In this document: positions 2,879 to 9,366 of the stretch, piece after piece | Numbering within the stretch: position 1 is the stretch's first letter | Layout of the letters: each line of letters starts with the position of its first letter | Assembly (NCBI RefSeq): GCF_000143415.4 | Contig: NW_003314261.1 | Span: 6,728,817-6,792,816, forward strand | DNA length: 64,000 nucleotides | Reading direction: 5' to 3' | From: Selaginella moellendorffii | Lineage: Eukaryota; Plantae; Lycopodiophyta | Notes under the pieces: model-generated | Database searches by the model: none | What the model saw: the letters and a program-made list of their open reading frames with translations, nothing else | What the model was told of the DNA's origin: nothing | Position numbers and translations under genes: made by a program

Positions 2879-3073
2879 ATGTCTCCTCGCCTCTTGGTCT
2901 CGCTTTCGTTTCTCCTACTGCTTGCTGCAAATGCAAATGCCGCCAGTGATAGTAATCTGGATGGTGATGCAGGTATCAGAATGTTTGGCGACGTCGGCTC
3001 TGACCCTCCCAAATCCATCGACTGGAGAACTTTGGGAGCCGTCACACCTGTTAAAGATCGTAAAGGATGCCAG
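2879..3073 (+). pseudogene. Orphan exon 1 of papain-like (C1A) gene
   Basis: Reads MSPRLLVSLS...[23 protein letters not shown], then breaks exactly where the GT donor would be. It is joined to sequence also found upstream of copy 2 (~6980-7070). Confidence 0.8.
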
Positions 3074-3248
3074 ATTGTTTACTTGCCATGCCATTTCTAA
3101 GCCAGCCTCGTGCATTGTCTTTCCTTGACTCATTCTCAGTAGTAAATCTGTTCAAGTCAACCAACACTGTTCACCCGCATGAGTCTCGTGGGGTGTTGTG
3201 ACCTGCTATATAACCCTTCGTTCTCTCGAGATAAGAAACTCCCTAAGA

Positions 3249-4244
3249 ATGTCTCTGCATCCCTTGGTTTCGCTTTCCATCCTCCTATTACTGCTTGCTG
3301 CAAATGCAAATGCCGCAAGTGATACTAATCCGAATGATAATGCAGGCATCAAAATGTTTGGCAACGTTGGCTCTGATCCCCCCAAGTCCATGGACTGGAG
3401 ACGTTTGGGGGCCGTCACACCTGTGAAAGATCGCAAAGGATGCCAGAGTATAAATCTTTAATCCTTTTTTCGCACTTTAGTGGTATATCACGATACAGAT
3501 GGTAGCTGGGCTTTTGCGGCAGCAGAAGCCATCGAGGGAATCAACAAGATTGCGACTGGAGTGTTGGTGGAGCTGTCGGCGCAGCAGCTGCTGGATTGCT
3601 CCCGGAGCTACGGTACCGATGGCTGCCACAGCGGGTTTCCCCAGAACGCATTTGATTACCTTGACGACACAGGGAATGGCCTCTCCACCGCATCGGATTA
3701 CCGCTTCACAGGATTCAATGGCACCTGCCGAAAACACGTAAGTGCGTGCGTGCTCTTGTGTTTCCATTGTTTTTTACTAAAGTTGTGCTCTTCCAGAACC
3801 GCTGCTCCGTAGGCATTGACAATTACGACTATATCGGGAGCTCCAGCGACGACACTGAGATCGTCAAGCAGGTTGCCAAGCAGCCCGTGACAGCTCTAAT
3901 CGATGGCAACGCGCCGGAGTTCCATCGCTACAAAGGGGTATGAGAAAAATCATTCTTTTTTGAAGGAGAACACGCTCAAGCCCAAAGTTCTAAAAATGCA
4001 GGGGATTTACAAGGGCCCGTGCAAAGACGACCAGGCAACGCCGTATCTAGCAGTGCTCATCGTCGGCTATGGATCAGAAAACGGCCAAGACTATTGGATC
4101 ATCAAAAACTCGGCGGGGACAAACTGGGGAGAGCAAGGCTACATGAGGCTGCAGCGTGGTAACCATGGCCTTCCACTGGGTCGATGTGGAGTAAATGGCT
4201 TCGTCTACTTTCCTGTCAAAGAGAAGGTACGACCATCTCCATAG
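3249..4244 (+). CDS. Papain-like C1A pseudoprotease copy 1 (signal peptide, no I29 prodomain, catalytic residues substituted, C-terminal tail cut by TAG)
   Basis: Exons 3249-3447, 3499-3737, 3797-3937, 4002-4244. Motifs [29 protein letters not shown] and YWIIKNS. Active-site region reads KDRKGCQNGSWAF and PYLAVL. Stop at 4242-4244 precedes Pro-rich coding sequence. Confidence 0.85.
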
Positions 4245-4639
4245 CCACCATCACCATCTCCGCCACCACCACCACCGTCATCTCTGCCGCCACCCTCTCC
4301 TCGACCACTGCCATCACCCTGCAGTTTTATTTTGCCGTTCCATACTTCGCATTAAAATGTACTCTCTTTAAACATGTTTACCTTGACTAAATTCCCTTAG
4401 AGAATTTCCAAACTTCGAACTTGTTTAAAAGAAACTCAAATTATGATCCCATCCCACCATGGACTTGCATAGCATTTGGTGAAATACGTCACTACAAGTT
4501 TGCCTCCAGACCAACGACTGAATGATGGTTTTAACGTCCAAATTTACAGAGGTGGCTATTATTGTTGTGTAAGAATGTGCCCTTAAGCCACCAGACTTGC
4601 AGCGTCTTATGTTTCCGTGGTTTTGAACTTTGCATGTCA

Positions 4640-5085
4640 GAACGGCATCTCTTTTGGCATTAGTACAACTATGACAATTTACTATGACAATTTCTACAGC
4701 TCCAGCAATGACATGGACATCCTCAGGCCGTGACAGATGAATTTAACTAACAAAGGGGTATGAGAAAAATCATTCTTTTCTTCTTTTGTGAAGGAGACCC
4801 TAAAAATGCAAGGCCCGTGCAAAGACGACCAGGCAAGTCTACATCTAGCAGTGCTCATCGTCGGCTATAGATCCAAAAACAGTGAATACATGAGGTTGCA
4901 GCATGGAGCCCATTGGCTCCCACTGGTTCGATGCAGGGTGAACGCCTTCGTCTACTTCCCATCAGAGAACCATCTGCATGATCGTCTCCGCCACCACCGC
5001 CATCTCCGCCGCCGCGCTCTCCTCGACTATCTCTCTCCGCCATCACCCCCAGTTCCGTGCTACAAGAGGATTAGCTGCAGCTTTG
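4640..5085 (+). pseudogene. Degenerate fragment of papain-like gene (exons 3-4)
   Basis: Deleted and frameshifted copy: [19 protein letters not shown]...[14 protein letters not shown]. Retains intron-3-like gtatgagaaaaatcattc. Confidence 0.8.
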
Positions 5086-5181
5086 TTTCGTCCGGGCCCT
5101 GGTGGAACAAATAAATGTACTGCCTATTCTCTTTAAACATGTATGTATTTTGCTGTAATATCTTTTAAACATGTTTAAAAG

Positions 5182-6423
5182 CTAGTCACTCTCCTCATCA
5201 CCAAAGTGTTCCTCATTCTCCTCATCACCAAAGTCTTTCTCAATCAGCGATTTGGGGTGAGTTCTGCAGCACGTATCTATCACAAACTGGGCTTCAATTA
5301 CCATATCCTTTTGCAAGAGTTTATTAGCCAGAAGCTTGCATGTCTTTTCATTTGGCTCCACCAGGTTACAGAAGGCCTCGAACTGGAACATCAAACGAGC
5401 AACTTCGGGATTCTTCTCGGTGTAAAGAATCTCCTCCAAAACCCGAGGGAAGCCCTGACTTGTTGCTCTTGTTGCAAGCTCAAACACCACACCGGCACTG
5501 GAGTTGCGATCGTCTAAACTCTTGGCTAGTGCCTTGTCGTCTAGCTTAATCAGCCCCTTCTTTAAGTTTGTGACGAGAAAATGCTTCCCCAGCCTTTCCT
5601 GGAGATCAAAATACAAATGCTTCTTGACCAGCTTGGGTGTAACATCCAGTGCCATTCCCATGCAGATGGCTTCTCTGATGATAGACGTGACAACATCAGC
5701 GTCCTGGGATTTGTTCAGCAAGATCTGATAAGCTTGCACTGGCTCCTCGACAATCTCAAGTACTACACCCATTATCTTCCTCCAATCATCATCACTATAA
5801 TCACTGCTACTTTCTAAGAGGTTTGAGCTTACCACCAGCTTGACGCCCTTGGCCCTGGCCTCCTTTGCAACCAAGTGTTTGAAACTTAGCTTGTGCGAGG
5901 AATTGAAAACTTTCTGGTAGACACTTGGCTCCGCTGTTATACAAGGATGCTCATTGATCATCTCTCGAAACAGCCTCTCCAAATCCTCAGGAGCAAAGTG
6001 CAAATGGACCAGATTCTCAAACACCAGAATCTCCCTCCTCAGATTCAGTTTCCTCATCTTTTCCATGGCAGAGGACACCTTGTGCTTGAGCACTCCGGTG
6101 TATTCCCTGTGATTATATTGATGCGGGTGCGCAAGAACTCTTGTAAACGTCTCCTGGTCGCAAGTTTCGTCCAGCATGTCTAGAGCCAGCATCATAAAAC
6201 CGCCATCGAGAACCCTCTGCACCATCCTGCTGTGACATCTCTTGTTGGTCACCTTGTGGAATCCCCATGCATGCAGTGGCATTGCCCTATCCAAAATCAC
6301 GTTGATTACCTCGTCCGGGAAGAGCTCCTCGAATTCTAAGTAGAGTTTGCCAAGCGCACTGCAGAAATCCGTGTCCAGCTCCTGATTCTCTATCACCACA
6401 GCCAAGACCTCCCTCGCCCTCAT
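5182..6423 (-). CDS. Intronless 413-aa protein of unknown function, predicted alpha-helical (degenerate PPR-like repeats), acidic C-terminus
   Basis: Long uninterrupted ORF with helical-repeat-like segments (AMEKMRKLNLRREILVFENLV, LFREMINEHP, AKEARAKGVKL). Paralog remnant at 8376-9366. Confidence 0.7.
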   Translation of the reverse strand: MRAREVLAVVIENQELDTDFCSALGKLYLEFEELFPDEVINVILDRAMPLHAWGFHKVTNKRCHSRMVQRVLDGGFMMLALDMLDETCDQETFTRVLAHPHQYNHREYTGVLKHKVSSAMEKMRKLNLRREILVFENLVHLHFAPEDLERLFREMINEHPCITAEPSVYQKVFNSSHKLSFKHLVAKEARAKGVKLVVSSNLLESSSDYSDDDWRKIMGVVLEIVEEPVQAYQILLNKSQDADVVTSIIREAICMGMALDVTPKLVKKHLYFDLQERLGKHFLVTNLKKGLIKLDDKALAKSLDDRNSSAGVVFELATRATSQGFPRVLEEILYTEKNPEVARLMFQFEAFCNLVEPNEKTCKLLANKLLQKDMVIEAQFVIDTCCRTHPKSLIEKDFGDEENEEHFGDEESD

Positions 6424-6546
6424 CCCTTTTGGAACTTTTAGTAATAGGTATGGATATTAGCCAAGGTAGCTTTTCCAAAGCCAACAGAGCCATATCGATA
6501 TCCGGGTGACAGTGATCAATCTTCCCTTCGTACGTCACTCATTCCC

Positions 6547-6960
6547 GCCATGGCGATTGTAAAGCTACTGAGATCATCGTGGAAGAACAGGGTGGGTTAC
6601 GAGGACGATTTGGGATCCATATCTCGGGATTGGCACATGCACAGCCGCCAGCACCGCTGCCCCTGGAGCTCGTCTTCCAGCTCATGGGCGGATTCAGCCC
6701 AAGTTTTTCACACGCTGGATCCAGATTCACAACTACGACTTTAAGGTCCTCGAGAGAGTTTTCTTGTTTTGGTTCTTATGATCACATATTTGACCATGTT
6801 CCGTACGGCTGGGTTGAAATCTCAGCGCTTTCGTGTAAGGTTCGATGTCTTCTCTATTGCGAGGCTGCAAACGCGGAGTTCTGATAAATGATATTCCGGA
6901 GATGCGAGTTGGCGAAATAATCAAACTGTGGATTGGACGAGCCGCCAATATTCATTCAAG
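6547..6960 (+). repeat. Diverged, internally deleted duplicate of 1731-2650
   Basis: Shared strings include ggatccatatctcgggattggcac, ccgctgcccctgga.ctcgtcttccagctcatgg, cacaactacgactttaa and gttgaaatctcagcgctttcgt. Confidence 0.8.
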
Positions 6961-7183
6961 CACTTCAGAGGTTCCCAATTGTTTACTTGCCATGCCATTT
7001 CTAAGCCAGCCTCGTGCGTTGTCTATCCTTGACTTCATTCTCAGTAGTAAATCTGTTCAAGTCAACCAAGTCTCTATCAATGTGTTAGTGTGATGGACAG
7101 TGTGTTCACCCGCATGAGTCTCGTGGGGTGTTGTGACCTGCTATATAACCCTTCGTTCTCTCCAGATAAGAAACTCCCTAAGA

Positions 7184-8355
7184 ATGTCTCTGCATCCCTT
7201 GGTCTCGATTTCCATCCTCCTATTACTGCTTGCTGCAGATCCAAATGCCGCAAGTGATACTAATCCGAATGGTAATGCAGGCATCAGAGTGTTTGGCGAC
7301 GTTAGCTCTGATCCCCCCAAGTCCATGGACTGGAGACGTTTGGGGGCCGTCACACCTGTGAAAGATCGCAAAGGATGCCAGAGTATAAATCTTTAATCCT
7401 TTTTTCGCACTTTAGTGGTATATCACGATACAGATGGTAGCTGGGCTTTTGCGGCGGCAGAAGCCATCGAGGGAATCAACAAGATTGCGACTGGAGTGTT
7501 GGTGGAGCTGTCGGCGCAGCAGCTGCTGGATTGCTCCCGGAGCTATGGTACCGATGGCTGCCACAGCGGGTTTCCCCAGAACGCATTTGAATACCTCGTC
7601 GACACAGGGAATGGCCTCTCCACCGCATCGGATTACCGCTTCACAGGATTCAATGGCACCTGCCGAAAACACGTAAGTGCGTGCGTGCTCTTGTGTTTCC
7701 ATTGTTTTTTACTAAAGTTGTGCTCTTCCAGAACCGCTACGCCGTAGGCATTGACAATTACGACAATTTCTACAGCTCCAGCGACGACACTGAGATCGTC
7801 AAGCAGGTTGCCAAGCAGCCAGTGACAGCTCTAATCGATGGCAACGCGCCGGAGTTCCATCGCTACAAAGGGGTATGAGAAAAATCATTCTTTTTGAAGG
7901 AAAACTCGCTCAAGCCCAAAATTCTAAAAATGCAGGGGATTTACAAGGGCCCGTGCAAAGACGAGCAGGCAACTCCGTATCTAGCAGTGCTCATCGTCGG
8001 CTATGGATCCGAAAACGGCCAAGACTATTGGATCATCAAAAACTCGGCGGGGACAAACTGGGGAGAGAAAGGCTACATGAGGCTGCAGCGTGGAAACCAT
8101 GGCCTTCCACTGGGTCGATGTGGAGTAAATGGCTTCGTCTACTTTCCTGTCAAAGCGAAGGTACCGTCTCCGCCATCTCCACCACCACCATCTCCGCCCC
8201 CGCCGCCACGACCACGACCATCTCCACCGCCATCACCCCCAGTTCCGTGCTACAAGAGAATTCACTGCGGCTTCACAGGCATTCCGTGTTGCTTTTCCTG
8301 GAAAGCCGTTTGCTGCCCCATGTGGAAGCGATGTACTTTCTCTGGATGCGCTTAG
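7184..8355 (+). CDS. Papain-like C1A pseudoprotease copy 2, with Ser-Pro4 linker and short 8-Cys granulin-like tail
   Basis: Exons 7184-7382, 7434-7672, 7732-7872, 7936-8355. Same active-site substitutions as copy 1. Ends [59 protein letters not shown]. Confidence 0.88.
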
Positions 8356-8375
8356 GATTTGTTTTAGATTGATTT

Positions 8376-9366
8376 TTATGTTTTGAAATGTCTCTTGGTT
8401 CTTGGGCTTAAGCACTTTAGGGAAAAGAAGGATTCCATTCTTAGGATCATCCCACCTCCAATTAAGTCTTCCCACTCTTCCGCTCTCTGCTCAAGACGAA
8501 GTTTGAGTTTCTTTTCAGTTGGATCTAGCACCACTCCCTTCTCACAAGCTTTTCTAACAATGGAGACAACGTCATGTAAGTTTTGAACACTGTCCAACGC
8601 CAACTTATAAACTATTGCTAGTTCCTCAACCATGTCCAGTACCAAACTCATATCATCAGATGCTCTCAAATGCAGATTGCTCAAACTTTTTGAGTCCAGC
8701 TCCACGCCTTTAGCTCTTGCCTCCTTGAAGACCGAGTCAGCGGATGGGGAACTGTCAAAAACCTTTTGGTAAACCTCTGGTTTTGCAGCAAGACTAGGAT
8801 GTTCGTTCACCATTTCAAGGAAGATATGCCCTGGTTCTGAATAGAGGAGCAAATAATCCTCAAACAGGACCATCTCACACTTGTATCCTAGACTCTTCAC
8901 CGTGTCCATTTTCTTCGCTAGTTTCATCCAGGTTTATCAGCTATGCATTTCAGGATCACACTTGTGAAGGTCTCTTGATCACACTTCTCGTTCAGCAAAT
9001 CTGGAGTCACAACTAGAAACCCTCCGTCAAGACTCCTCTTCTCTTTCCCGTGAGATTGTGAAAATGCCATGCTTTGAGTGGCATGGCCTTATCAAGAATC
9101 AAATCGATCAGCGCATCAAAGAATACCTCCTTGTGCACTGCATAGAGCTCGCCAAGCTTGTCAAGGAGCTCCCTGTCTAAATCCACGCATCGCAGAACCC
9201 TAGAAAAACTTGAAATTTTTACATAGTTCCCAAGAATCTTAGCAATCATGTTACCATGTGGTAAAGCCGCAAAAGTCTGATGTTTGCGCTTGGAAGCACG
9301 CAAAGAGCCAAGCTTTGTTTTGTTTTCATTCCGATTAATCAATCCTTTGTTCCTTGGGAGCAGCAT
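8376..9366 (-). pseudogene. Broken paralog of the 413-aa helical protein
   Basis: Two ORF pieces align to 5182-6423: ILDKAMPLKAWHFH vs ILDRAMPLHAWGFH; EMVNEHPSLAAKPEVYQKVFDSS vs EMINEHPCITAEPSVYQKVFNSS; KEARAKGV. A stop and frameshift fall at ~8930-9015. Confidence 0.75.

Follow-up and report, generated by a model that had tools for sequence, protein, structure and literature searches.

Gene structure and expression

The window analysed here is a 64,000-nt stretch of the Selaginella moellendorffii genome (assembly GCF_000143415.4, contig NW_003314261.1, positions 6,728,817 to 6,792,816 of the forward strand), and all coordinates are window positions unless another scaffold or locus is named. 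The gene under study, termed D, encodes a protein with the fold of papain in which the catalytic residues are replaced and the I29 prodomain is absent; the gene is expressed and correctly spliced, and the reading favoured here is of a protein that acts by binding rather than by cleavage. The features of the gene are as follows.

7143..7150, + strand: TATA-like box CTATATAA, about 20–40 nt upstream of the first RNA contig ends
7164..8387, + strand: transcribed region, from coverage by spliced RNA contigs
7184–8355, + strand: focal gene D, four exons, 999-nt open reading frame (ORF), 332 amino acids (aa)
7184..7382, + strand: exon 1, with the start codon, candidate signal peptide, 20-aa spacer and start of the mature domain (PPKSMDWR...KDRKGCQ); Arg62 at the Gln19 position
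7383..7433, + strand: intron 1, 51 nt, GT..AG
7434..7672, + strand: exon 2, with the Asn67-Gly-Ser69 sequon and GCHSGF in place of GCNGG
7673..7731, + strand: intron 2, 59 nt, GT..AG
7732..7872, + strand: exon 3, middle of the papain domain
7873..7935, + strand: intron 3, 63 nt, GT..AG
7936..8154, + strand: exon 4, papain-domain part, with Leu209, Asn229 and Ala231
8155..8247, + strand: Pro-rich linker of about 31 residues (267–297), Ser-Pro motifs including SPPP, no Tyr
8248..8355, + strand: 8-Cys C-terminal module (residues 298–332) and stop codon

The predicted product was letter-for-letter identical to P0151, which is XP_024529729.1 of S. moellendorffii (auto-named "zingipain-1"), and the four-exon model and intact reading frame of the initial annotation were borne out. 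A candidate signal peptide occupies approximately residues 1–23, with a hydrophobic core at residues 4–17 by hydropathy, and this segment was modelled as a helix over residues 5–16. Judging by this N-terminal hydrophobic signal and by descent from proteases of the secretory pathway, D is probably secreted or vacuolar.

RNA contigs from four runs of four studies were mapped over 6400–8700. The transcript 3' end lay at 8387 in all four runs, 32 nt past the stop codon, and contig 5' ends were found at 7164 (run X2) and at 7181–7182 (run X1, with Illumina adapter immediately before); RNA contigs were absent from 6400–7160 and 8402–8700 in the four runs. The junction 7382/7434 (intron 1), singled out for RNA verification in the initial annotation, was seen in three runs (X1, X2 and X8), 7672/7732 (intron 2) in X1 and X7, and 7871/7935 (intron 3; cut +1) in X7 and X8. 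The contigs skip exactly the three introns and therefore represent spliced RNA. A low-depth unspliced contig in X1 (7356–7445) corresponds to a minor form that retains intron 1. Two other X1 contigs carried unrelated letters at the end of exon 1 (7385) or the start of exon 2 (7432); chimeric assembly, other paralogs or rare alternative junctions could account for them.

No splice form restoring the catalytic residues was seen among the RNA contigs of the four runs, and an upstream prodomain exon or alternative splice was ruled out by these contigs together with a prodomain tblastn of the whole window. Repair of the dead codons at the RNA level was also rejected, no variant letters being present at 7439–7441 or 7981–7983 in the four runs, with the limit that contigs can mask rare variants.

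Papain domain, active site and prodomain

The Pfam model Peptidase_C1 (PF00112) matched residues 45–264 of D at 199.6 bits (cut-off 20.7). Residues were compared, in papain numbering, with solved plant papain-like cysteine proteases (PLCPs) and with 55 active relatives. The catalytic Cys25 is replaced by Ser69 (codon 7439–7441, AGC, exon 2), the catalytic His159 by Leu209 (7981–7983, CTA) and the oxyanion Gln19 by Arg62, at positions where Cys, His and Gln are present in 55 of 55 active relatives. Trp177 is replaced by Ala231 (8047–8049, GCG), which turns KNSWG into KNSAG, and Asn175 is kept as Asn229. All of the active-site substitutions called in the initial annotation were thus confirmed. 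Against the active relatives D also shows Gly23 changed to Asn67 and Gly65 to Ser111, one extra residue between Cys22 and position 25, and a three-residue insertion ahead of Leu209; Asp158 is changed as well, and in total at least eight conserved cleft positions are altered. Because nucleophile, general base and oxyanion Gln are all gone, D is predicted to be unable to cleave and is, from its residues, a non-peptidase homologue by the MEROPS definition.

The structural framework of the domain is kept. Six structural cysteines (C65, C109, C100, C143, C200 and C255) are invariant in a 66-sequence alignment, in agreement with the earlier claim that they were intact, and by cysteine conservation the three conserved C1A disulfides (Cys22–63, 56–95 and 153–200) are present in D. 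An AlphaFold2 model of D, built from the 66-sequence alignment, had a mean predicted local distance difference test score (pLDDT) of 81.9. Within the papain domain most blocks of ten residues exceeded 90; hinge and tail reached 56–69, and the spacer that follows the signal stayed below 50. When superposed on solved structures, as had been proposed, the modelled papain domain matched ginger protease, ervatamins, actinidin, ficins and cathepsin S with template modelling (TM) scores of 0.90–0.96; for plant PLCPs the TM scores were 0.92–0.96 and the root-mean-square deviation was 1.4–2.0 Å.

The I29 propeptide, reported at the outset to be missing, was not recovered. No match to the I29 prodomain (PF08246) was found in the D protein, while the paralogs P0278 and P0010 do match, and tblastn of three I29 prodomains against the whole 64-kb window found no I29-like coding sequence and returned noise only.

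Pro-rich linker and Cys-rich tail

The linker carries repeated Ser-Pro(3-5) motifs within 30 residues, an extensin-like feature, and having no Tyr it lacks the Tyr-containing cross-linking motif of extensins. Wall tethering of the extensin type was rejected on account of the Tyr-less linker, and the wall tether put forward in the initial annotation found no support and is somewhat disfavoured. The linker sits where RD21-type proteases have their Pro-rich hinge. It aligns at the same place as the hinge of RD21/XBCP3-type proteases and is longer.

The tail that follows has the cysteine spacing C-5-C-7-CC-6-CC-5-C-5-C. The Ser-Pro repeats and 8-Cys module described for this region stand; the label "mini-granulin" attached to the module was not confirmed as such. 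None of four tails matched Pfam Granulin, even with E allowed to reach 10. When the tails were compared by hhalign with 49 plant granulin domains, the match was weak (P = 5e-4, 31% probability) and confined to the N-terminal half; with these results and 8 cysteines rather than 12–14, membership of the tail in the granulin family was rejected. A model of the tail alone (AlphaFold, pLDDT 69.5) had no Foldseek or VIA-align match, and an ESM Atlas feature search with the tail gave nothing usable. In a MAFFT alignment the tail falls on the N-terminal half of plant granulin domains, right after the homologous hinge, and the 10-Cys tail of P0278 looks intermediate between a granulin and the 8-Cys tail. 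From its position, its Cys pattern and the P0278 tail, it is plausible that the tail is a reduced granulin by descent.

A clade of inactive paralogs

Further papain-domain proteins of the same genome share the inactive state of D. Four lineages were distinguished, the fourth being D with its paralogs E and B.

P0003: no prodomain; Ser at position 25; Leu at position 159; Laminin_G_3 domain at the C-terminus
P0278 (F): I29 prodomain; Thr at position 25; Leu at position 159; Pro-rich hinge and 10-Cys tail
P0010 (G): I29 prodomain; Gly at position 25; Thr at position 159; no C-terminal part
D/E/B: no prodomain; Ser at position 25; Leu at position 159; Pro-rich hinge and 8-Cys tail (lost in B)

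Common to all of these lineages are one extra residue ahead of position 25, a substitution of Gly65 (S, K, S and Y across the lineages), S29A, E50A (papain numbering) and other derived residues. In a quick maximum-likelihood tree of papain domains, the eleven dead sequences stood together on one side of a branch with a Shimodaira–Hasegawa-like approximate likelihood ratio (SH-aLRT) support of 100, and within them the prodomain-bearing F and G were separated from the prodomain-less LamG fusions and D/E/B with support of 89. The LamG fusions (XP_002971529.2, P0003) are sister to the D group in this tree and resemble D in Ser at 25, Leu at 159, the same insertion and the lack of a prodomain; they differ in having Laminin_G_3 in place of the stalk and 8-Cys tail and in keeping Trp177. 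Because the insertion before position 25 is common to lineages with and without the prodomain, catalysis would have died first, and we infer that catalysis was probably lost once and the prodomain once afterwards.

After the members of the clade, the next matches to the clade profile were RD21/XBCP3-type proteases, more than 100 bits lower (tandem-domain proteins aside), almost all with Granulin. The closest active relatives of D were 42–48% identical and almost all carried Granulin (PF00396). A phmmer search with exon 4 (1.84 billion representatives) and a search with the single protein placed only S. moellendorffii sequences ahead of the active RD21/XBCP3 relatives. By these comparisons the dead clade descends from a granulin-bearing RD21/XBCP3-type protease. 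A literature search found no description of this clade.

The remodelling of the cleft extends to its glycosylation potential. Within three residues of Cys22, 3 of the 4 dead lineages carry an N-x-S/T sequon, against none of the 55 active relatives; it is found in D (7434–7441, Asn67-Gly-Ser69), P0003 and P0010, at two different positions. A glycan at this cleft-loop sequon may fill or plug the former active site.

These features bear on the function proposed in the initial annotation, an apoplastic decoy or sponge whose open cleft would trap EPICs, Avr2, Pit2-like peptides or plant cystatins and so shield or tune active proteases. D is dead and probably secreted, its cleft lacks the prodomain that would block it, its papain domain is under purifying selection (see below) and the gene is expressed; its descent from the RD21/XBCP3 group also fits, RD21-like proteases being frequent effector targets (PMC12485362), and a report on wild Hordeum proposes a decoy role, speculatively, for expressed PLCP pseudopeptidases (PMC13520124). 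A decoy should, however, keep the surface that inhibitors recognise, yet the cleft is the most altered part of D, with changes at Gln19, Gly23, Cys25, Gly65, Asp158, His159 and Trp177 and insertions before positions 25 and 159; each dead lineage has its own replacement of Gly65, and the former active-site loop carries the N-G-S sequon. In cystatin–papain complexes Trp177 touches the second hairpin of cystatins, and in D this contact residue is Ala. The decoy mechanism was therefore not supported and is somewhat disfavoured; we regard it as unlikely, and a non-catalytic binding protein would be rated well above an inhibitor decoy.

Paralogous copies and selection

Upstream of D the window holds a tandem array of related copies.

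2879..3074, + strand: fragment A, exon-1-only copy, joined straight to the promoter region of B
3249..4244, + strand: paralog B, same four exons and same dead residues, 93% nucleotide identity to D
4599..5174, + strand: fragment C, decayed copy of exons 3–4 with deletions and frame breaks

In B a TAG at 4242–4244 in the Pro-rich linker gives a 273-aa product without the Cys tail (P0002, annotated). The distinctive tail sequence of B was found as the loose end of an RNA contig in X2, and B is therefore transcribed too. A truncated copy and decayed fragments at one locus imply that family turnover is high, and the array at 2879–5174 testifies to fast gain and loss of copies. Paralog E (P0270, 336 aa), whose haplotype partner is Eh (P0267, 325 aa), occupies a second locus some 6.8 Mb along this scaffold. 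A second scaffold has the arrangement of the window, with B' (P0271, 273 aa, same truncation) and D' (P0268), and was taken to be the other haplotype. The D and E genes are intact in both haplotypes at both loci.

Codon alignments of six copies were used for Nei-Gojobori estimates of nonsynonymous (dN) and synonymous (dS) divergence. Comparison of the D and E loci gave dS of about 0.19–0.21 and dN/dS of 0.29–0.37 for the gene as a whole and dN/dS of 0.12–0.28 for the papain domain (Fisher p 5e-4 to 2e-6), and changes in the Pro-rich linker were almost all synonymous. The papain domain is under purifying selection and neutral decay is rejected, which agrees with the earlier statement that the gene is not decaying. 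That statement had been hung on three points, and on each the outcome was the same: no restoring splice or prodomain exon was found, the gene is expressed (in four studies), and the paralogs compared do not show neutral decay. In the Cys tail dN/dS was 0.37–0.51 and dN 0.30; 8 of 8 cysteines are conserved, and the loops and loop lengths differ (paralogs E and Eh).

The pattern in the tail raises a second alternative, in which D is the carrier or precursor of a Cys-rich peptide, the fast-evolving 8-Cys tail on its Pro-rich stalk being an antimicrobial or signalling knob and the dead body serving for folding, secretion or display. The retention of all eight tail cysteines with diverging loops speaks for it, as do a tail dS of 0.6–0.8, so far above that of the papain domain that the tail escapes homogenisation, and the Cys-rich tail (10 Cys) also kept by paralog F; the granulin domain that RD21 releases is regarded as a stable module (PMC12485362). 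Yet the papain domain is the most constrained part of the protein (dN/dS 0.12–0.28), B, although tail-less in both haplotypes, continues to be transcribed and is intact in other respects, a tail of this kind is missing from the LamG and G lineages, and the searches made gave the tail neither relatives nor a confident fold. A carrier role is accordingly considered quite improbable.

Other features surround the papain copies. An intronless 413-aa ORF on the opposite strand (5182–6423, − strand) flanks D, and a decayed relative of it lies beyond D (8376–8927 and 9013–9366, both − strand; 37–59% identity in pieces). A Pfam search of the flanking ORFs 5185–6423 and 8379–8927 gave no match to this repeated ORF family around the papain copies. 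On the scaffold of the other haplotype (L001, 1927–10660) a 423-aa GH5 mannosidase model spans 8.7 kb and encloses both papain copies; either these genes sit nested in a long intron or the mannosidase model itself has been mis-joined.

Comparison with known systems

The RD21/XBCP3 PLCPs (subfamilies 1 and 4) have the same order of papain domain, Pro-rich hinge and C-terminal Cys-rich module (PMC12485362) and the same three papain-domain disulfides as D. Unlike them, D has no I29 prodomain, and Cys25, His159 and Gln19 are replaced; its tail has 8 Cys against 14 and no match to the Granulin hidden Markov model, and its hinge has roughly double the length.

Soybean P34 (Gly m Bd 30K) is a C1A homologue without the nucleophile and without protease activity, made with a pre- and pro-region and located in the seed vacuole (PMC2292165), whereas D has no prodomain. 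SPE31 of Pachyrhizus (PDB 2b1m, 2b1n) has a papain fold without the catalytic Cys and, like P34, no protease activity (PMC2292165); it was a structural match to the D model (TM 0.89, 42% identity). In contrast to P34 and SPE31, D also lacks His159 and has in addition a Pro-rich stalk and Cys tail, and the likeness is that of a shared family.

The C1A pseudopeptidases of wild Hordeum are lineage-specific, tandem and expressed, many with Cys replaced by Ser, and a binding or decoy role has been suggested for them; in the available part of that report they were classified on the mature domain alone, and loss of the prodomain or a reduced granulin tail is not reported there (PMC13520124). They belong to a different plant lineage and derive from a different PLCP ancestor from D. 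What is different here is the combination of a lycophyte-specific clade, loss of the prodomain after catalytic death, and a hinge with a reduced Cys module or a swap to LamG.

Proposed function and significance

We consider it likely that D is an expressed, secreted, non-catalytic papain-fold protein (a C1A pseudoprotease) that acts by binding and not by cleavage. The ancestor of the clade would first have lost catalysis, with an insertion between Cys22 and position 25 and the loss of Cys25, His159, Gln19 and Gly65; the I29 prodomain would then have been lost on the branch to the D group and the LamG-fused paralogs, and the granulin domain would have been cut down to the 8-Cys module behind a lengthened Pro-rich hinge. 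RD21 relies on its own catalytic Cys and His to cut off the granulin domain (PMC12485362); this autocatalytic step would be impossible in D, which has neither Cys25 nor His159, so the tail would be retained and the mature protein would probably still comprise the papain fold, the Pro-rich stalk and the knob formed by the Cys module. That both the body and the Cys framework are under selection argues for a structural or binding role. D would act through binding, and its remodelled, possibly glycan-filled cleft suggests that it is no simple imitation of the cleft of an active protease.

Several observations weigh against this reading. The signal peptide was called by eye and from hydropathy only. 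The tree came from an unfinished quick search, has long branches and was built without Selaginella's own active PLCPs. Run against 5.8 billion proteins, with 8000 candidates scored, the clade profile picked up members in S. moellendorffii alone, a restriction that holds within these searches, in which other lycophytes may be thinly represented. The array places a truncated copy and two decayed fragments beside D. Among the closest copies (D, B and haplotypes) dN/dS was 0.5–0.6, on only 8–20 changes and hence uninformative. Finally, dS was 0.11–0.15 in the papain domain against 0.4–0.8 in linker and tail, and among the loci compared for gene conversion (window 7184–8355, L002 6001–7202 and L003 6001–7164) Bh has residue patches in common with Eh. 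From this gap in dS and the sharing between Bh and Eh, gene conversion likely homogenises the papain-domain exons and spares the tail, and it could lower the apparent divergence of the papain domain.

Some of these observations would also suit a young family in slow decay, made of recent duplicates that are transcribed and functionless: the truncated B and the fragments A and C lie within the same 6 kb, the closest copies show the dN/dS of 0.5–0.6, and the family was found in one species only. This is very improbable given the comparison of the D and E loci, in which the papain domain is constrained, the ORFs intact in both haplotypes at both loci, and the correct splicing of transcripts in four studies. 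Moreover, the dead state is common to paralogs that are 44–62% identical and keep every structural Cys and Gly; since it is present in such distant, fold-keeping paralogs, it is old, with the fold preserved from then on.

Plant immunity depends centrally on papain-like proteases, whose prodomain is considered necessary for both inhibition and folding. On the reading of D as a non-catalytic binding protein, the clade was kept by selection after the loss of catalysis and, in two lineages, of the prodomain. It offers a natural test of prodomain-independent papain folding, and its members are ready-made scaffolds for non-catalytic binding that differ in their C-terminal modules. In databases the members carry enzyme names (zingipain-1, mexicain, cysteine proteinase 7), and these distort any tally of active proteases in early vascular plants; for S. 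moellendorffii one survey gives only four PLCP orthologs (PMC5762910). More speculatively, and with a rather low probability in our estimation, a lycophyte may have evolved its own family of secreted papain-fold receptors or sponges, which would fold without the prodomain commonly seen as their folding chaperone and carry exchangeable C-terminal modules (8-Cys, 10-Cys, LamG) for extracellular recognition, for example to capture pathogen inhibitors or peptides. If true, pseudoprotease-based surveillance would have been invented independently outside seed plants.

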